Assembly (NCBI RefSeq): GCF_030028105.1
Contig: NC_092374.1
Coordinates: 8,856,998-8,920,997 of the forward strand
DNA: 64,000 nucleotides
Direction: 5' to 3'
Source: Mobula birostris
Taxonomy: Eukaryota
Shown piece by piece: positions 31,841 through 60,582 of the stretch. Position 1 is the stretch's first letter. Each line of letters starts with the position of its first letter. The translations under genes were made by a program, and so were the position numbers. The notes under the pieces were generated by a model. It ran no database searches and was not told where the DNA came from. It saw nothing but the letters and a program-made list of their open reading frames with translations.

Positions 31841-32689
31841 ATAAAGGTCAAATTTACTGTCGCTTTATCTCATGACAATATCAGTGATTCTGACCTGATT
31901 CAAAGTTCGAGATACATTTACTTCAAAGTATGTATACATTATACAACCTTGAGATTCGTCTCCTAACAGGCAGCCACTAAACAAAGAAACCCAAAAGAAC
32001 CCATCAGAAACAGACTGTCAAACACTGCAGAGAGAAAAGTAAATCATGAAAACAATAAACAAAAGCAAATAGCATTCTGAACTGAACTGAGATACAGCGG
32101 AGAAACAAACTGCATGGTAGCGCACCAGTTAACGCAATCACATGACCGTGCCAAAGGTCACCAGGGTTCAATCCCTTACCGCTATGTGTAAGGAGTTTGC
32201 TCATTCTCCCATCGCCACATGGGTTTCCTTCCCCTTCCCACAGCAGTGGAGCAGTGCGCGAACAGGAAACTTATCTGTCAGCTCCACACGGCTGCTTCCT
32301 ATACCGGTCATTCCCTCAGGCTGACTGACACAGTGGTGTAAGTGAGAGGATAGTGTATCAAGGATCACCTTTGTTTGCCATATGCATTTACATATACTCA
32401 GAATTTGTTGTGGTGTGCTGGTCAGGGTGCAGCATGTAACAAAAAAACAACATATGGAATAAAAGGTGCATAAATATATAAATACCCACGGGTGCTAACT
32501 ACGAAGGTTGATCAGATTAACTGCCTGGGGGAAGAAACTTTTAAGATGGTGTGCAGTTTTTGTTTTAATTGCCCTATGGTGCTTTCCAGAAGAGAGCTTT
32601 TGGAGAAGGCAGTTTGCAGGATGGGTAGTGTCCAATAATGTAGCCTGCCTGCTCCTTTGTTCTGGACACGTACAAGTCCTACAGTGATG

Positions 32690-33244
32690 TATATGGGGTG
32701 TCAAGGAGGGGTAGCACCTCTGGTGGAGGAACATGTCGCGTCCTTTTCAGGGCGGTTAGTCCACCTTTGGTCCCCACCTGGCACTCAGCTCTCACCTGTG
32801 GCTCCCCGTAGCTGTTTGCATGCGACAGCGGCCACACCCGGGCAACGGCTTCGACAAGCGGGCTAAACCAGGTGAGGGTAGCCGACGGGTCTCAAACCCT
32901 CGGTGAGATAGGGAGTTGTCTATCCCAGCATGTGAAGACAGACTCCGGCGGATTGAGCGGACGAGACCAATGGAAGGCCCAACGGTCAAGAAGGCGGTCT
33001 CTGCAAGCGTCGTGGAACGTGTAGAGCAGGACAAGACACAGGAGACGTCCTGGTCATCCACTGCGCCTAGTCCCATCTCCAGCCGTCTAGACTCTGTCTT
33101 GCCACTGGACATAGATGGGAATTGGGAAGAGAGAGTGAGGCTGACGCTGCGCAACTCTCCCTCACTTAAATCCAAATCATGCGCTAGTCTCGACACCATC
33201 ATAATGGTGTCGAGGTCCTCTTTGACGTCAATGATGGACGAACA
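32690..33244 (+). mobile_element. 555-bp non-autonomous retroelement with a 5' HDV-like ribozyme, probably RTE-related
   Basis: TSD ACAGTGATG at 32681-32689 and 33245-33253. Inserted in a Rex1-like fragment; ends in AACAAC; CpG-rich; no recognisable protein ORF. Confidence 0.75.
32695..32876 (+). ncRNA. Predicted HDV-like self-cleaving ribozyme
   Basis: P1 GGGTGT 32696-32701/ACACCC 32834-32839. P2 CTCACCTGT 32791-32799/ACCAGGTGAG 32867-32876. P3 GGC/GCC. L3 TCCCCGT. GGGCAAC after P1'. P4 around GCTT-CGAC-AAGC. J4/2 GCTAA with catalytic C at 32863. Confidence 0.72.
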
Positions 33245-33414
33245 ACAGTGATGGTTGACTGCAGTCAATGGCCTTTACTGCTGACCTGACAGTTCGCTTT
33301 AGTTTCTGTATATCGTGAGACATATATGTGATATAAACAGTATGAGGATTCCCCCTTCTGGGAAAGGTATGACCCGGACAAAAAGGACGGGTTGGAACTG
33401 AACCCAAGGCGGTC

Positions 33415-34345
33415 CAATATCCTTGCAGGCAGGTTTGCTGGAGCTGTTGGGGAGAATTCAAATGAACTTGGCAGGGGGCTTGGGAACTGGTGTGATAGGG
33501 CTGAATCCCACTGAATCGTGGCTGAATGAAGATTATAGCTCGGAGCTTAATATCCAAAGATACACATTCCATCGAAAGAACAGACAGGAAAGCAGAGGGG
33601 GTGGGCTCTCTCTGTAGGTAAAAACTGAAAACAAATCTTTATAAAGAAGAGATGTAGCATCAGGAGATGTAGAATCCTCGTGGGTAGAGTTAAGAAACTG
33701 GAAGGGTAAAAAGATCTTAATGTTCGTTATAAACATATCCAATGTTGGCATTCATTTTGAGAGGACTCGAATATAAAAGCAAGGATGTAATGTTGAGGCT
33801 TTCTATAGCTTTGGACAGACCACACTTGGAGTATTGTAAGCAGCATTGGGCCTCTTATCTGAGACAAGATGTGCTGGCATTGGAATGGGTCCAGAGGAGG
33901 TTCACGAGAATGGTTCTGGGAATGAAAGGGTTAACGCATAAGGATCGTTCGATGCCTCTGGGCCTGGACTCCCTGGAGTTTAGAATAACGGTGGGGGATC
34001 TCATTGGAACCTATCAAATATTGAAAGGACAAGATAGAGTGGACGCGGAGGGGATGTGTCCTACAGTGGGGGAAGGCACAGCCTCAGAATAGAGGGACGA
34101 TCCATTTAGAACAGAGATGAGGAGGAATCTCTTCAGACAAAGGGTGGTAAATCTGTAGAATTCATTGCCATGGATATTTGTGGAGAACATGTCATTGAAT
34201 ATGTTTAAAACTGAAGTTTTTATATAGGTTTTTGATTAATCAGGGCATCAAAGGTTTTGGGGAGAAGATAGAAAAACAAGGTTGAGAAGGATAATACATC
34301 AGCCATGATGGAGCATAATCAATGGCCTAAATCTGTTCCTATGTC
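33415..34345 (+). mobile_element. Rearranged CR1 fragments (ORF1 end, endonuclease piece, RT end)
   Basis: TESWLNED..RKNRQESRGGG; MLAFILRGLEYKSK..RPHLEYC. Confidence 0.72.
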
Positions 34346-34436: not shown

Positions 34437-34817
34437 TCCCGGCCACCATCCTGGAGCTGTCTCTTGTGACTGATGATGACAGAGAGACTCTGGTGTGCAG
34501 GGCTGAAGGAGAACCCCCTGCAAGCATCACGTGGATCGGCCCTGAGAACAGCGCACTGCCCGCCAACGGTAGTGAGATGAGATTCACGCGAGATCCAGAG
34601 CGACATCAGGTTGTTGGGGAGCTTTCCCACCCCAGGACGGGAGGAAGCTACCACTGCGTGGCTGAGAATGGACACGGAAGAGACACGCGTGAGATTGACC
34701 TGTCCGCCACAGATAACAGTTACTCGAATTTCATCATCGGAATGCTGTGCCTGATTCCACTGATTAAGTTTCTTCTCCTTCTGATAACAGGCATCATTCT
34801 CTTCATTAAGATAAAAG
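34437..34817 (+). CDS. Siglec-15-like gene, C2-set Ig domain plus transmembrane exon with charged Lys
   Basis: LVCRAEGEPPASITW..GSYHCVAENGHG resembles Siglec-15 LCTAEGEPPPALAW..GRYTCTAANSLG. TM FIIGMLCLIPLIKFLLLLITGIILFI has Lys at 34766-34768. Phase 1 at both ends (ctcgag| acceptor, AAAG|GTACC donor). Confidence 0.88.
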
Positions 34818-35349
34818 GTACCTCAGGCCTCATCTATTTGTTTTAAAGCGAGTGAGAAGTGAGGCAGTTAGCCATCACAGAACATAGAATATTACAGCAC
34901 GGAACCAGTCCTTCAGCCCACAATGCTGTGCCGATCCTCTCACCTACTCTAATATCAATCTAAACTTTCCCTCCCACATAGTCTCCATTTTCCTATCATC
35001 CATATGCCTAAGTCCCCTAAATGCCCCCAATGTGTCTTCCTCTACCACCACCCCTGGCAGGGCATTCCATGCACGTGTAGAAAAACTTAACTCTATCATC
35101 CTGAATCACCTTAAAATCATGCCCCCTCTTATGGGCTGTAGAGAGCATTCTAACTGGTTGCATCACTGCCTGGTATGCAGGAGAGGCTGCCGCACAGGAT
35201 CTGAAAATGCTGAAGAAAGTTGTAAATTCAGCCGGCTCCATCATGGGCGCTGGCCTCCCCAGCAGTGAGGACATCTTCAAAAGGCGATGCCTCAAAAAGG
35301 CGGCATCCATCGTTAAGGGTCCCCATCACCCAGGACATGCCCTCTGTCT

Positions 35350-39905: not shown

Positions 39906-41240
39906 TTTATTGAGAGAATAACAGGACATAAAAGAAAGTAACAATAGAATTGGTTAATAATTACGCAATGTTTCCAAGAGCAGGCACCGGAAACACATTT
40001 ACCAGAAGTCCCAAAGAGGAATTGAGAATTTTACTTCTTAACCTGAGTTTTAGTAGGAAAGTGGAAGTGGTTTCCAAGTGAGTGGGATGAATTGTAGTAA
40101 TGTGTTAAAGGGGAAGTGAGGGAAATAAGAGCAAATTAAATTTGTCAGCTGCTGAAATGGCATGTATACTCAGCCTTAGTGTTACAAGCAATCTTGTCCA
40201 TAGCTAATATTATTATTTATTGATTGGATTTCCACACCCATTGGTCCCAATTAGTGATGTTCCACTGCCACATTCCTTTATTTACTCATTATTCAGGACA
40301 TTGGCACCTCTTCCAAGGTTGGGAATTAATGTTCTTTGCTAATTGTTACCCACCAGGCAAACTGCCTTTTCCAAGAGCTTCCTTCTGGAAAATTTTATAG
40401 GGCAATTAAAACAAAAACTTCACACCATTTTACAAATTTCATCTCCCAGGCAGTTGACCTGAGCTGCCACCCTCTCTATCATTTCTACCACTGCACTGGA
40501 AGCACTTTAAACCACTTTTTGTACAGCTGTTTAAATACATGTTGGAATTTATGTATTTACGCACATATTATTGCAATATCTGTACTTTAACTCTGTTTAT
40601 TTTTATATAGTTATTTATTCCTTGTAATCACTGAATGTTGTTTCTGTTGCATGTCACACCCTGACAACACACCACAGCAAATTCCTGACACTACATATAA
40701 ATCTATATGCTGAAAAAAGTTGTTCCTTGAACAGTGGCTGCTGGCCAGTTAGATGGCACTTAAGAGACAACCACACTGGTGGGTCTAAAATTGAAGAGAG
40801 CTCACACCAGATTCAACATGACTTCAAAAACTTTGACAAACTTCTACAGATATGTAGTGGAGAGTGTATTGACTGGCTGCATCACGGCCTGGTATGGAAA
40901 CACCAGTGCCCTTGAATGGAAAGTCCTACAAAAGATGGTGGATTCAGCCCAGTACATCACGGGTAAAGACCTCCCAACTATTGAACGCATCTACATGAAA
41001 AGCAGCATCCATCATCAGAGATCCTCACCGCCCAGACCATGCTCTCGTCCTGCTGCTGCCATCAGGTAGAAGGTACAAGAGCCTAGGGACTCGCATCACC
41101 AGGTTCAAGAACAGTTACTAGCCCACAACGATTGAGCTCTTGAACAAAAGGGGATAACTACACTCACTTGCCCACTCATAGAGATGTTCCCACAACCAAT
41201 AATCTCACTTTAAGGTCTCTTTATCTTGTTATTTTAGATT

Positions 41241-49100: not shown

Positions 49101-49274
49101 ATTTTCACCCCAGCCACACTGTCAGCTCTGGCACTCTGGTTCCCATCCCCCTGCAAATCTAGTTTAAAGCCTCCCCAACAGCACTAACAAACCTCCCTGA
49201 AAGGATATTGGTCCCCCTGTGGTTCAAGTGTAACCCGTCTCTCTTGTACAGGTCCCACCTGCCCCAGAAGAGGT
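46151..49274 (-). mobile_element. Near-complete CR1 ORF2 (APE endonuclease + RT) with ORF1 esterase C-terminus; 5'-truncated
   Basis: ORFs 48761-49156, 48377-48760 and 46298-48319 share one frame, separated by single TAG codons. Motifs: NARSI, ISETW, GDFN, SDH, QHGF, PQGSVLGP, FADD. ORF1 end WDLYKRDGLHLNHRG; (tctatggt)n tail. Confidence 0.95.
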
Positions 49275-49690
49275 GAATCCAACTCAGAACCCTGTACCTG
49301 CCTTCTCTCCATACCCCCTGATCCCTTTAGCCACAAGGGCCATATCTAACTCCCTCTTAAATATAGCCAATGAACTGGCCTCAACTGTTTCCTGTGGCAG
49401 AGAATTCCACAGATTCACCACTCTCTGTGTGAAGAAGTTTTTCCTAATCTCGGTCCTAAAAGGCTTCCCCTTTATCCTCAAACTGTGACCCCTCGTTCTG
49501 GACTTCCCCAACATCAGGAACAATCTTCCTACATCTAGCCTGTCCAATCCCTTTAGGATTTTATACGTTTCAATAAGATCCCCCCTCAATCTTCTAAATT
49601 CCAATGAGTATAAGCCTAGTGGATCCAGTCTTTCATCATATGAAAGTCCTGCCATCCCAGGAATCAATCTGGTGAACCTTCTTTGTACTC
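49275..49690 (-). mobile_element. CR1 3' fragment (different subfamily)
   Basis: VQRRFTRLIPGMAGLSYDERL..FFTQRVVNLWN. Confidence 0.85.
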
Positions 49691-59735: not shown

Positions 59736-60582
59736 ACGGTCTTATACCAAATCTCATCAAACAGATACAATTGTTTCTGTCTTCAGTGTTCCGGTTAGAA
59801 CATTTGCTACTACCACCAAGGTTCGCAGCTATAGCAGCTCCTCCGGGGCCTAGGCTTCTGTGCTCACTGCAGCGTGTCTCCCACTTGCTGCTGCATAGCT
59901 CCCGCGGGCATTGCTCCTCTCTGTCAGCGACGGCTGGGTATGGTCCCGACGGGCTGTGTTGATCAGGGCCCAACATGCAACCAAAGACAACTTTCAATAA
60001 TTATAAAAAAAAAAATTATATAAAATGAAGTTAGACATTAAACTACAGGTATGGAATATTTGTTTTCATAAATACCAGTAGGTACTGTGTTTACAATGTA
60101 GACAACACTATAAAAGGTGGTTTAAGGTGTTCACAGGATAGAAGTTGAATGGTCGACCAGATTAACTGTCTGAGGGAGAAGCTTTTAAAATGACATTAAG
60201 TTTTTGTTTTAATAGCCCTACAGTATTTTCCAATAGGGAGCTTTTGGAAAAAGCAGTTTGTTTGCAATGATTTTTCCTGCCTGTTTCTTTATCCTGGGCA
60301 TACACAAGTCCTGCAGTGACGGTAAACTGCAGCCAATGACCTTTTCTGCCGACCTGACAGTTTCCTGTTGGTTTTCTATATTGTGAGAGAAATTTGATTG
60401 ATTCTGAAGTGATTTGAAGTCTGCAGAAACCTATTCCCGCCTACGAATTGTCTGGACTTACCCAAATTTGAATGTTAGACGGCGGGCTGAACGTACGTGG
60501 GAGGAAAATGTTATTGCTGAGATTGGTTTTGACACAAAACAAAATACCGCCAGGGCTCCGGGGAGCTGGGAGAGGGCAGTGG

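Follow-up and report, generated by a model that had tools for sequence, protein, structure and literature searches.

A probable bipartite LINE derivative headed by a predicted HDV-like ribozyme in Mobula birostris

Ribozymes resembling those of hepatitis delta virus (HDV) have been established or predicted at the 5' ends of R2, RTE, L1Tc, and other long interspersed elements (LINEs) (PMC3774820, PMC3185411, PMC5786205). RTE LINEs, for which 5' HDV-like ribozymes are predicted, also spawn bipartite derivatives devoid of an open reading frame (ORF), and a connection between the ribozymes and these derivatives has been proposed (PMC5786205). Non-autonomous derivatives that retain the ribozyme are on record as well, namely the SIDEs of R2 (PMC3414825) and NARTc of L1Tc (PMC3383444). 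Described here is a 555-bp element at positions 32690-33244 of a 64,000-nt stretch of the genome of the ray Mobula birostris (assembly GCF_030028105.1, contig NC_092374.1, positions 8,856,998 to 8,920,997 of the forward strand; hereafter the window, with all features on the plus strand unless noted). Taken as a whole, the element is likely a bipartite LINE derivative carrying a 5' HDV-like self-cleaving ribozyme, and its family a non-autonomous LINE derivative of manta and devil rays. As ribozyme-headed deletion derivatives of LINEs are already known, the ray element adds no new principle; it is a well-supported new example with an unusual predicted ribozyme variant.

The closest counterparts are WALLSI3 and RTESINE2, bipartite LINEs of the RTE clade (Kojima 2018, PMC5786205), which likewise consist only of the 5' and 3' parts of a LINE, arose through internal deletion, keep the true 5' end, have a microsatellite-type tail, and presumably depend on RNA polymerase II or read-through transcription. 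The ray element differs from them in belonging to a family of cartilaginous fish, in its ~509-nt 5' part, and in having its joint within a hairpin whose counterpart in the parent is a long-range 5'-3' helix; the parent is likened to these LINEs by architecture and not by a tree. The R2 SIDEs of Drosophila (Eickbush & Eickbush 2012, PMC3414825) and the NARTc/L1Tc pair of Trypanosoma cruzi (PMC3383444, PMC3185411) are comparable deletion derivatives that keep a 5' HDV-like ribozyme and a 3' recognition end. Those derivatives come from the R2 and ingi/L1Tc clades, and experiments have demonstrated their cleavage, whereas that of the ray element is predicted; R2 is moreover site-specific in rDNA, whereas the ray element is dispersed, introns included.

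With respect to the ribozyme itself, large structured J1/2 domains are known among HDV-like ribozymes (PMC4908430, PMC3774820), and a P1.2 peripheral domain activates the large ones (PMC4908430). The ray module shares with the drz-Agam-2 family (Webb et al. 2016, PMC4908430) and with the R2 ribozymes (PMC3774820) the nested double pseudoknot, an extended and structured J1/2, a P4 that is short or variable, and its place at a retrotransposon 5' end. It departs from both in a G-C pair at the cleavage site, a 19-21-nt hairpin in L3, a tandem P1 strand that would close J1/2, and the lack of a match to any Rfam model. The genomic HDV ribozyme and the mammalian CPEB3 ribozyme have in common with it the U-CC-N-C-G of L3, the GGGCAAC after P1, and the C-N-A-A of J4/2, and the CPEB3 ribozyme also occupies an intronic sense site. 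At ~190 nt, as against ~70-85 nt for HDV and CPEB3, the ray module is far larger, and it is borne by a multi-copy repeat rather than by conserved single-copy host sequence. A loose and incomplete literature search returned, among its top-ranked hits, nothing relevant on HDV-like ribozymes in sharks or rays, which is weak evidence of novelty.

The insert and its relation to an autonomous LINE

Three contigs with ENA proteins (L009-L011), found by translating the reading frame that runs through the predicted ribozyme, carry LINE copies of ~4.07 kb that are mutually 99.3% identical and encode one ORF of ~1,070 amino acids with Exo_endo_phos and RVT_1 domains. Positions 6-509 of the ray element correspond to the first 504 nt of these copies at 77% identity (BLAST), and a second LINE lineage, in the Logan contig L012, matches the 5' part of the element at 76%. 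At the opposite terminus, the LINEs end in ...GACGGACGAACA or ...TCGTCGACAACGACGGACGAACA followed by a variable trinucleotide microsatellite, and the end of the element, ...GACGTCAATGATGGACGAACA-AC, aligns with the LINE 3' end over ~40 nt, a span that takes in the terminal GGACGAACA and the microsatellite. The element carries both LINE termini and none of the 3.2-kb ORF, and it is very probably an internally deleted, bipartite LINE derivative made of ~509 nt of 5' untranslated region (UTR) and ~45 nt of 3' end, from which the whole ORF has been lost.

Because both ends are shared with an autonomous LINE, the insert would be neither a fragment of a single LINE nor a short interspersed element (SINE) with a foreign head. 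That it might be a mere 5'-truncated or internal piece of one LINE insertion, with no family of its own, accords with the derivation of positions 6-509 from a LINE 5' UTR but not with the presence of both termini around a missing 3.2-kb ORF, nor with the recurrence of the joined form at very high depth and with sharp edges in several species, nor with a target-site duplication (TSD) of its own; hardly any credence can be given to it. High copy number and short length would equally suit a conventional SINE transcribed by RNA polymerase III from an unrecognized small-RNA head. ARAGORN, however, finds no tRNA in the element, no Rfam small-RNA model matches it, and its head is the LINE's own 5' end; with no head derived from tRNA, 7SL, or 5S RNA, this origin is rejected as exceedingly improbable. 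The first-pass annotation of the window had suggested a SINE-like element mobilized by an RTE-type LINE: an autonomous LINE with both ends in common is indeed present in public assemblies (L009-L012), but the element appears to be a deletion derivative and not a SINE with a new head.

The same annotation had reported neither a tRNA head nor a recognizable ORF, and both statements hold. The longest ORFs of the element, of 111 amino acids on the plus strand and 158 on the minus strand, have no Pfam match, and no conserved ORF was found in the 5' UTRs of the related LINEs; as candidate genes, both were rejected for want of a family match and of conservation in the LINE 5' UTRs. A minus-strand ORF of the element is 93-94% identical to uncharacterized proteins of M. 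birostris and M. hypostoma. Mobula annotations include uncharacterized proteins built on such element copies.

The architecture of the LINE, with a single ~1,070-residue ORF for an apurinic-type endonuclease and a reverse transcriptase, no ORF1, a 3' UTR of ~35 nt, a microsatellite tail, and a TSD opening with the tail repeat, supports an autonomous relative of RTE-like organization. Membership in the RTE clade itself is a candidate assignment, made by architecture and not from a reverse transcriptase tree. The C-terminus of the LINE protein (L011:14000-14088) ends in a C2H2-like motif, CPTCGRGFRARIGLISHSRTH, which is kept in L012 and might help to place the clade.

Downstream of the predicted ribozyme, the body of the element (32877-33188) derives from the LINE 5' UTR, to which it aligns at 76-77% in L009-L012, and includes a box, CTGCGCAACTCTCCCTCAC (33147-33165), kept in all LINE relatives compared. 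There follow a perfect 11-bp hairpin (33189-33214) and a tail (33215-33244) that is homologous to the LINE 3' end (...GGACGAACA) and then runs into the AC of an (ACA)n-type microsatellite; hairpin and terminal AACAAC are both as first described. The LINE 5' UTR homology stops inside the 5' arm of this hairpin, and the deletion joint lies in its loop. In the LINEs, the 5' UTR segment AAGACATC(A/G)C has its complement in (T)GTGATGTC(TT), a stretch overlapping the stop codon ~45 nt before the 3' end. This long-range complementarity, of 8-11 bp between the 5' UTR segment AAGACATCAC and the stop-codon/3' UTR segment GTGATGTC (L011:10545-10556 with L011:14083-14095), recurs with wobble changes in L011, L012, L013, L014, and L015, and two double compensations set the hairpin of the element apart from the LINEs. 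The hairpin corresponds to the collapsed form of this helix, in that the internal deletion took out exactly the 3.5-kb loop of a conserved long-range helix. Two readings of this origin are available: the reverse transcriptase may have skipped across the stem, or the stem may be needed for mobilization.

The insertion itself and its own TSD are real. The insert is flanked by the 9-bp repeat ACAGTGATG at 32681-32689 and 33245-33253, the sole direct repeat of at least 9 nt within 32640-33300, and the flanks (32506-32687 and 33246-33328) run contiguously in a paralogous copy of the host repeat at 60151-60396. At the empty site of this paralog (60300-60345, the target near 60320), the target occurs once (CAGTGACGG); it is the single target there, together with the flanking direct repeat, that establishes the event, and the first-pass placement of the empty site at about 60304-60342 is borne out. 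The right TSD starts with ACA, matching the tail repeat. Microhomology priming has been described for RTE-related retroposons (PMC6007223), and the ACA start is compatible with a similar process here. Also as first described, the insert lies in sense orientation in an intron of a plus-strand immunoglobulin (Ig) receptor gene, between the second V exon (~29.1-29.6 kb) and the exon for the C2 domain and transmembrane segment (~34.5-34.8 kb). No second copy of the element occurs in the 64-kb window.

Several features of the surroundings may be recorded beside the insertion. The host sequence around the insert is itself a high-copy repeat, at a depth of 10^3-10^4, with segments at 32400-32687, 33246-33600, 40347-40684 (minus strand), 49122-49280 (minus strand), and 60151-60396, and its minus strand encodes a CR1/Rex1-type C-terminal motif (...KSFFPQAVNLINL). 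The last exon of the receptor (34466-34846) codes for an Ig domain of the C2 type and, after it, a transmembrane segment that contains a lysine, which is compatible with an activating receptor.

The 5' module and its likeness to HDV-like ribozymes

The first ~190 nt of the element can be folded as an HDV-like ribozyme whose strands follow the order P1-P2-P3-(L3)-P3'-P1'-P1.1-P4-J4/2-P2', and all helices that the first-pass annotation had listed are present. P1 pairs 32696-32701 with 32834-32839; its 5' strand is provided by a GGGGTGT unit (32695-32701), the only one possible in this copy. The 89-nt J1/2 (32702-32790) is a long irregular hairpin resembling a P1.2 peripheral domain. It is succeeded by the 5' strand of P2 (CTCACCTGT, 32791-32799), the invariant GGC of P3 (32800-32802), and an L3 core, UCCCCGU (32803-32809), that supplies the CC for P1.1 and the U and G of a reverse wobble; UCCUCGA in L012 and UCCAAGU in L004 keep the U, the CC, and the G. 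Inserted within L3 is a 21-nt hairpin with a GCTGT/ACAGC stem (32810-32830) that is present in all lineages, where T.G changes to T-A and one whole pair is lost in L004, and that stands outside the canonical HDV-like fold. The 3' strands of P3 (GCC, 32831-32833) and P1 (ACACCC, completing the segment 32831-32839) come next, the latter being ACACCCC in the LINEs and in ~23% of the family depth.

The GGGCAAC at 32840-32846 comprises the invariant GG of P1.1 and a J1.1/4 that reads GCAAC, CAAAC, or TACAC among relatives. P4 (32847-32860; GGCTT-CGAC-AAGC(G), with GCTT-CGAC-AAGC as the paired part in this copy) forms 5 bp in most copies, which have a C at 32860. J4/2 (GGCTAA, 32861-32866) contains the candidate catalytic C32863, which together with the AA is invariant in five sequences, and the 3' strand of P2, AC(C)AGGTGAG (32867-32876), pairs with 32791-32799 around one bulged C. 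The fold thus has a C followed by N-A-A (C32863-T-A-A) directly before the P2 3' strand, and the U..G reverse wobble of L3 with a CC that can pair to the GG of P1.1 is found as UCCCCG, UCCUCG, and UCCAAG. As to the complete nested double pseudoknot originally proposed, its helices stand, but L3 is not a simple 7-nt loop, and in the family the P1 strand is probably a different, upstream unit.

This last qualification arises from the 5' ends of relatives. Two tandem units, GGGGTGT-NN-GGGGTGT, occur in L004, L011, L012, L015, the decayed L016, and the consensus of 101 contigs of run X9, as a duplication of the first 7-9 nt (L011:10042-10060, L012:2-17, L015:2-17, L004:1795-1812, and L016:154-170). 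L010 is without the upstream unit, and the window copy (32690-32701) retains of it only TATAT (32690-32694), a remnant of the GGGGTGTAT unit of full-length members; the loose-end consensus of run X9, which reads ...GGGGTG before 32692, and the two-unit relatives indicate that this copy is 5'-truncated by ~4 nt. Nested folds pair the downstream unit with CCTG(A/G)CAC(C/T)C (32777-32786 in the window), which closes the J1/2 domain. This closing helix shows a G-C, G.U, and A-U series at 32700/32782, and the A of L015 at the equivalent of 32700 would break pairing with P1'. With the downstream unit engaged in the closing helix, the upstream unit, with which full-length copies start, is free for P1, and it is probably the upstream unit that acts as the P1 strand in intact members while the second GGGGTGT closes J1/2.

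Arguments for and against self-cleavage

In intact members of the family, the 5' module is probably a functional HDV-like ribozyme, and several lines of evidence converge on this reading. A descriptor (P3 of 3 bp; L3 of TCCNNG plus at most 25 nt; a 6-nt P1' followed by GG; P1 no more than 120 nt upstream; C-N-R-A directly followed by a P2 of 8 bp that may hold one bulge) matches no other site on either strand of the window, and it also matches L011, L012, and L004. Its chance rate is 0.03 per dinucleotide-shuffled window and 0.0003 per shuffled element, figures that are supportive and not decisive, as the descriptor was fitted after the fact and loosened just enough to admit the candidate.

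An alignment of four independent intact lineages, namely the element at 32690-33244, L011, L012, and a short element in the metagenome contig L004, adds evidence from pairing. Canonical pairs fill all 36 cells of P2, with one two-sided change (T-A to A-T at 32797/32870) and one one-sided change, and 17 of the 20 cells of P4, with two two-sided changes (G-C to C-G; T-A / T.G / C-G); the L3 hairpin is canonical in 23 of 23 cells, with one one-sided change. P1 (24/24), P3 (12/12), and P1.1 (8/8) are canonical throughout and invariant, and controls with slid registers score far lower than the real helices. In each lineage J1/2 adopts a single long, irregular hairpin, supported by five or more covarying pairs (RNAalifold). 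Invariant across the lineages compared are also C32863, the AA that follows it, the U, CC, and G of L3, and the GG of P1.1. Between L011 and L012, the ribozyme core is identical at 86 of 88 positions (98%) and the P1 unit at all seven, as compared with 82% identity in J1/2, 81% in the ORF, and 64% at third codon positions of the ORF, and the disparity between the core and the third positions points to strong purifying selection on the core. Full-length copies start at the first G of GGGGTGT and are preceded by unrelated flanks.

Left out of the covariation analysis were L016, L017, and L018, which represent a single locus, identical flanks included, in three metagenome samples; the copy there is decayed in its core and lacks the P1.1 GG and the catalytic C. 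The metagenome contigs WLWI01 (L004:1-130 and L004:1795-2056; L001:1-60) carry a shorter element of ~240 nt, made of the predicted ribozyme and a shared stretch of ~55 nt before the copies diverge. It occurs twice in one 2-kb contig (L004), beside host-like genes for an M16 peptidase and an OTU protein; a cullin gene is present in L001.

A different account would keep the bipartite LINE derivative but make its 5' module non-catalytic, for instance an internal promoter, a protein-binding structure, or a translation structure, with the 5' end set by the start of transcription and the HDV likeness partly coincidental. A number of observations weigh against self-cleavage, and many of them favor this account. 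No Rfam family at gathering score was found across the whole window, be it a hammerhead (including at 1236-1473) or another; relaxed scans at E<=10 or E<=1 turned up no ribozyme family (HDV, CPEB3, and drz-* models included) there or in the three related LINE contigs scanned, a miss that is unsurprising should the models fail on the long J1/2 and the L3 insert. Every lineage has G-C rather than G.U at the cleavage site, where HDV specifically requires a G1:U37 wobble (PMC1874588). A compact L3 closed directly by a 3-bp P3 is replaced by a conserved 19-21-nt hairpin between the L3 core and P3', a feature of which no description was met for HDV-like ribozymes in the literature consulted.

Since P1, P3, and P1.1 never vary, their support is conservation without covariation, and what covariation there is comes from only four independent intact lineages; strong conservation, furthermore, shows function and not catalysis. 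The GGGGTGT strand has a competing, more stable partner at 32777-32786, in which the nested minimum-energy fold places it. No pile-up of RNA 5' ends was seen in contigs from RNA runs, which are assembled contigs and one of which is probably DNA. A descriptor search of L013 and L014, LINE relatives with 74-79% protein identity, recovered no recognizable ribozyme; both the distal 5' UTR box and the 3' end recur in them, but their 5'-terminal sequences (L013:1-290; L014:1-450) are unrelated, which suggests that the 5' module was swapped. The parent LINE, finally, is described from other public assemblies, and self-cleavage of the module is a prediction.

Against a non-catalytic module stand all the HDV-like hallmarks in the right order and spacing (the C-N-A-A before P2', the GG after P1', and the U-CC-..-G in L3) at the low chance rate per window given above, the invariance of the hallmark positions, and the location of the fold exactly at the 5' terminus of the element, as in R2, RTE, and L1Tc. 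On balance, the non-catalytic account is improbable, though far from negligible.

The identity or near-identity of the GGGCAAC and L3 core to those of HDV could also be taken to indicate a retroposed piece of a deltavirus-like circular RNA or of a retrozyme-type circular RNA element, and the whole element does fold better than its shuffles on both strands (z of about -2.8). Such an origin is contradicted by the homology of the body to a LINE 5' UTR and by the lack of a delta-antigen-like or other Pfam match; the element has a single ribozyme-like fold, not tandem or paired ones, and its LINE tail and TSD bespeak target-primed insertion of a linear RNA. The candidate was rejected and its probability is minimal.

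If the 5' module is indeed an HDV-like ribozyme, with its P1, J1/2 domain, P2, P3, L3 with hairpin, P1.1, short P4, and J4/2, transcription reading through from a host promoter would be followed by a cut immediately 5' of P1, leaving an RNA with a defined 5' end. The protein of the partner LINE would then recognize this RNA via the shared 3' end, and the ensuing target-primed reverse transcription could rely for priming on microhomology of the (ACA)n tail to the target.

The copy in the receptor intron is itself a poor candidate for such activity. Its single GGGGTGT gains more from the closing helix (-14.0 kcal/mol) than from P1 (-10.7 kcal/mol), its P1' offers 6 bp and not 7, and a G at 32860, where most copies have C, costs one pair of P4. 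Given the lost upstream unit, the preference for the closing helix, and the weaker P1' and P4, this copy is probably a slightly 5'-truncated member with a weak or dead ribozyme, and the prospect of efficient cleavage by it is low. It follows that cutting of the receptor pre-mRNA, which the first-pass annotation had raised, is possible, but efficient cutting is unlikely.

Abundance of the family and implications

The element is a member of a repeat family that is very abundant in several species of ray. When contigs of public runs from at least 4 organisms are aligned with the region, their summed depth, which is a sum over contigs and not a copy number, climbs from ~700 at 32676-32684 to 1.3 x 10^5 at 32694-32702, reaches 2-6 x 10^5 within the element, and drops below 10^4 past 33236; both edges are sharp in runs from at least 4 organisms. 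Single contigs have depths of 4-17, which suggests a copy number on the order of 10^4. Most variants within the family are CpG transitions and are uninformative on pairing.

Beyond rays, the LINE protein has more than 1,600 relatives in public assemblies at E<=1e-20, many on contigs of ~4.1-4.3 kb; among the relatives listed, the only one with a named organism is from a frog, and in a protein atlas the nearest clusters are mostly from Chordata. A profile of the translation of the ribozyme frame matches 62 cluster representatives, which indicates that the module is widespread in diverged form. Scans of viral contigs for exact patterns yielded nothing, and matches in bacterial genome contigs were discarded as 20-nt chance matches.

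In its most far-reaching form, the proposal would be that rays carry some ten thousand copies of an active, unusual HDV-like ribozyme, with a G-C site pair, an L3 hairpin, and a duplicated P1 strand that also closes a peripheral domain; that these copies were spread by a deletion derivative whose collapsed 5'-3' helix is needed for recognition by the LINE; and that sense intronic copies cut host pre-mRNAs widely, including those of immune receptors. This full combination is rather unlikely, though not negligibly so.

For annotation, the consequence is that many intronic sense copies in ray genes may self-cleave, and that no Rfam family flagged the elements in the window or in the three LINE contigs scanned. 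The module also raises the questions of whether an HDV-like core tolerates an L3 hairpin and a G-C pair at the cleavage site, whether the tandem P1 unit sets the 5' end, and whether the long-range 5'-3' helix explains the position of the deletion. The link between ribozymes and RTE derivatives has previously been argued mainly from insects, trypanosomes, and R2; the ray family would provide a clear vertebrate case in which the origin of a highly successful non-autonomous LINE derivative is tied to an HDV-like ribozyme at the 5' end.

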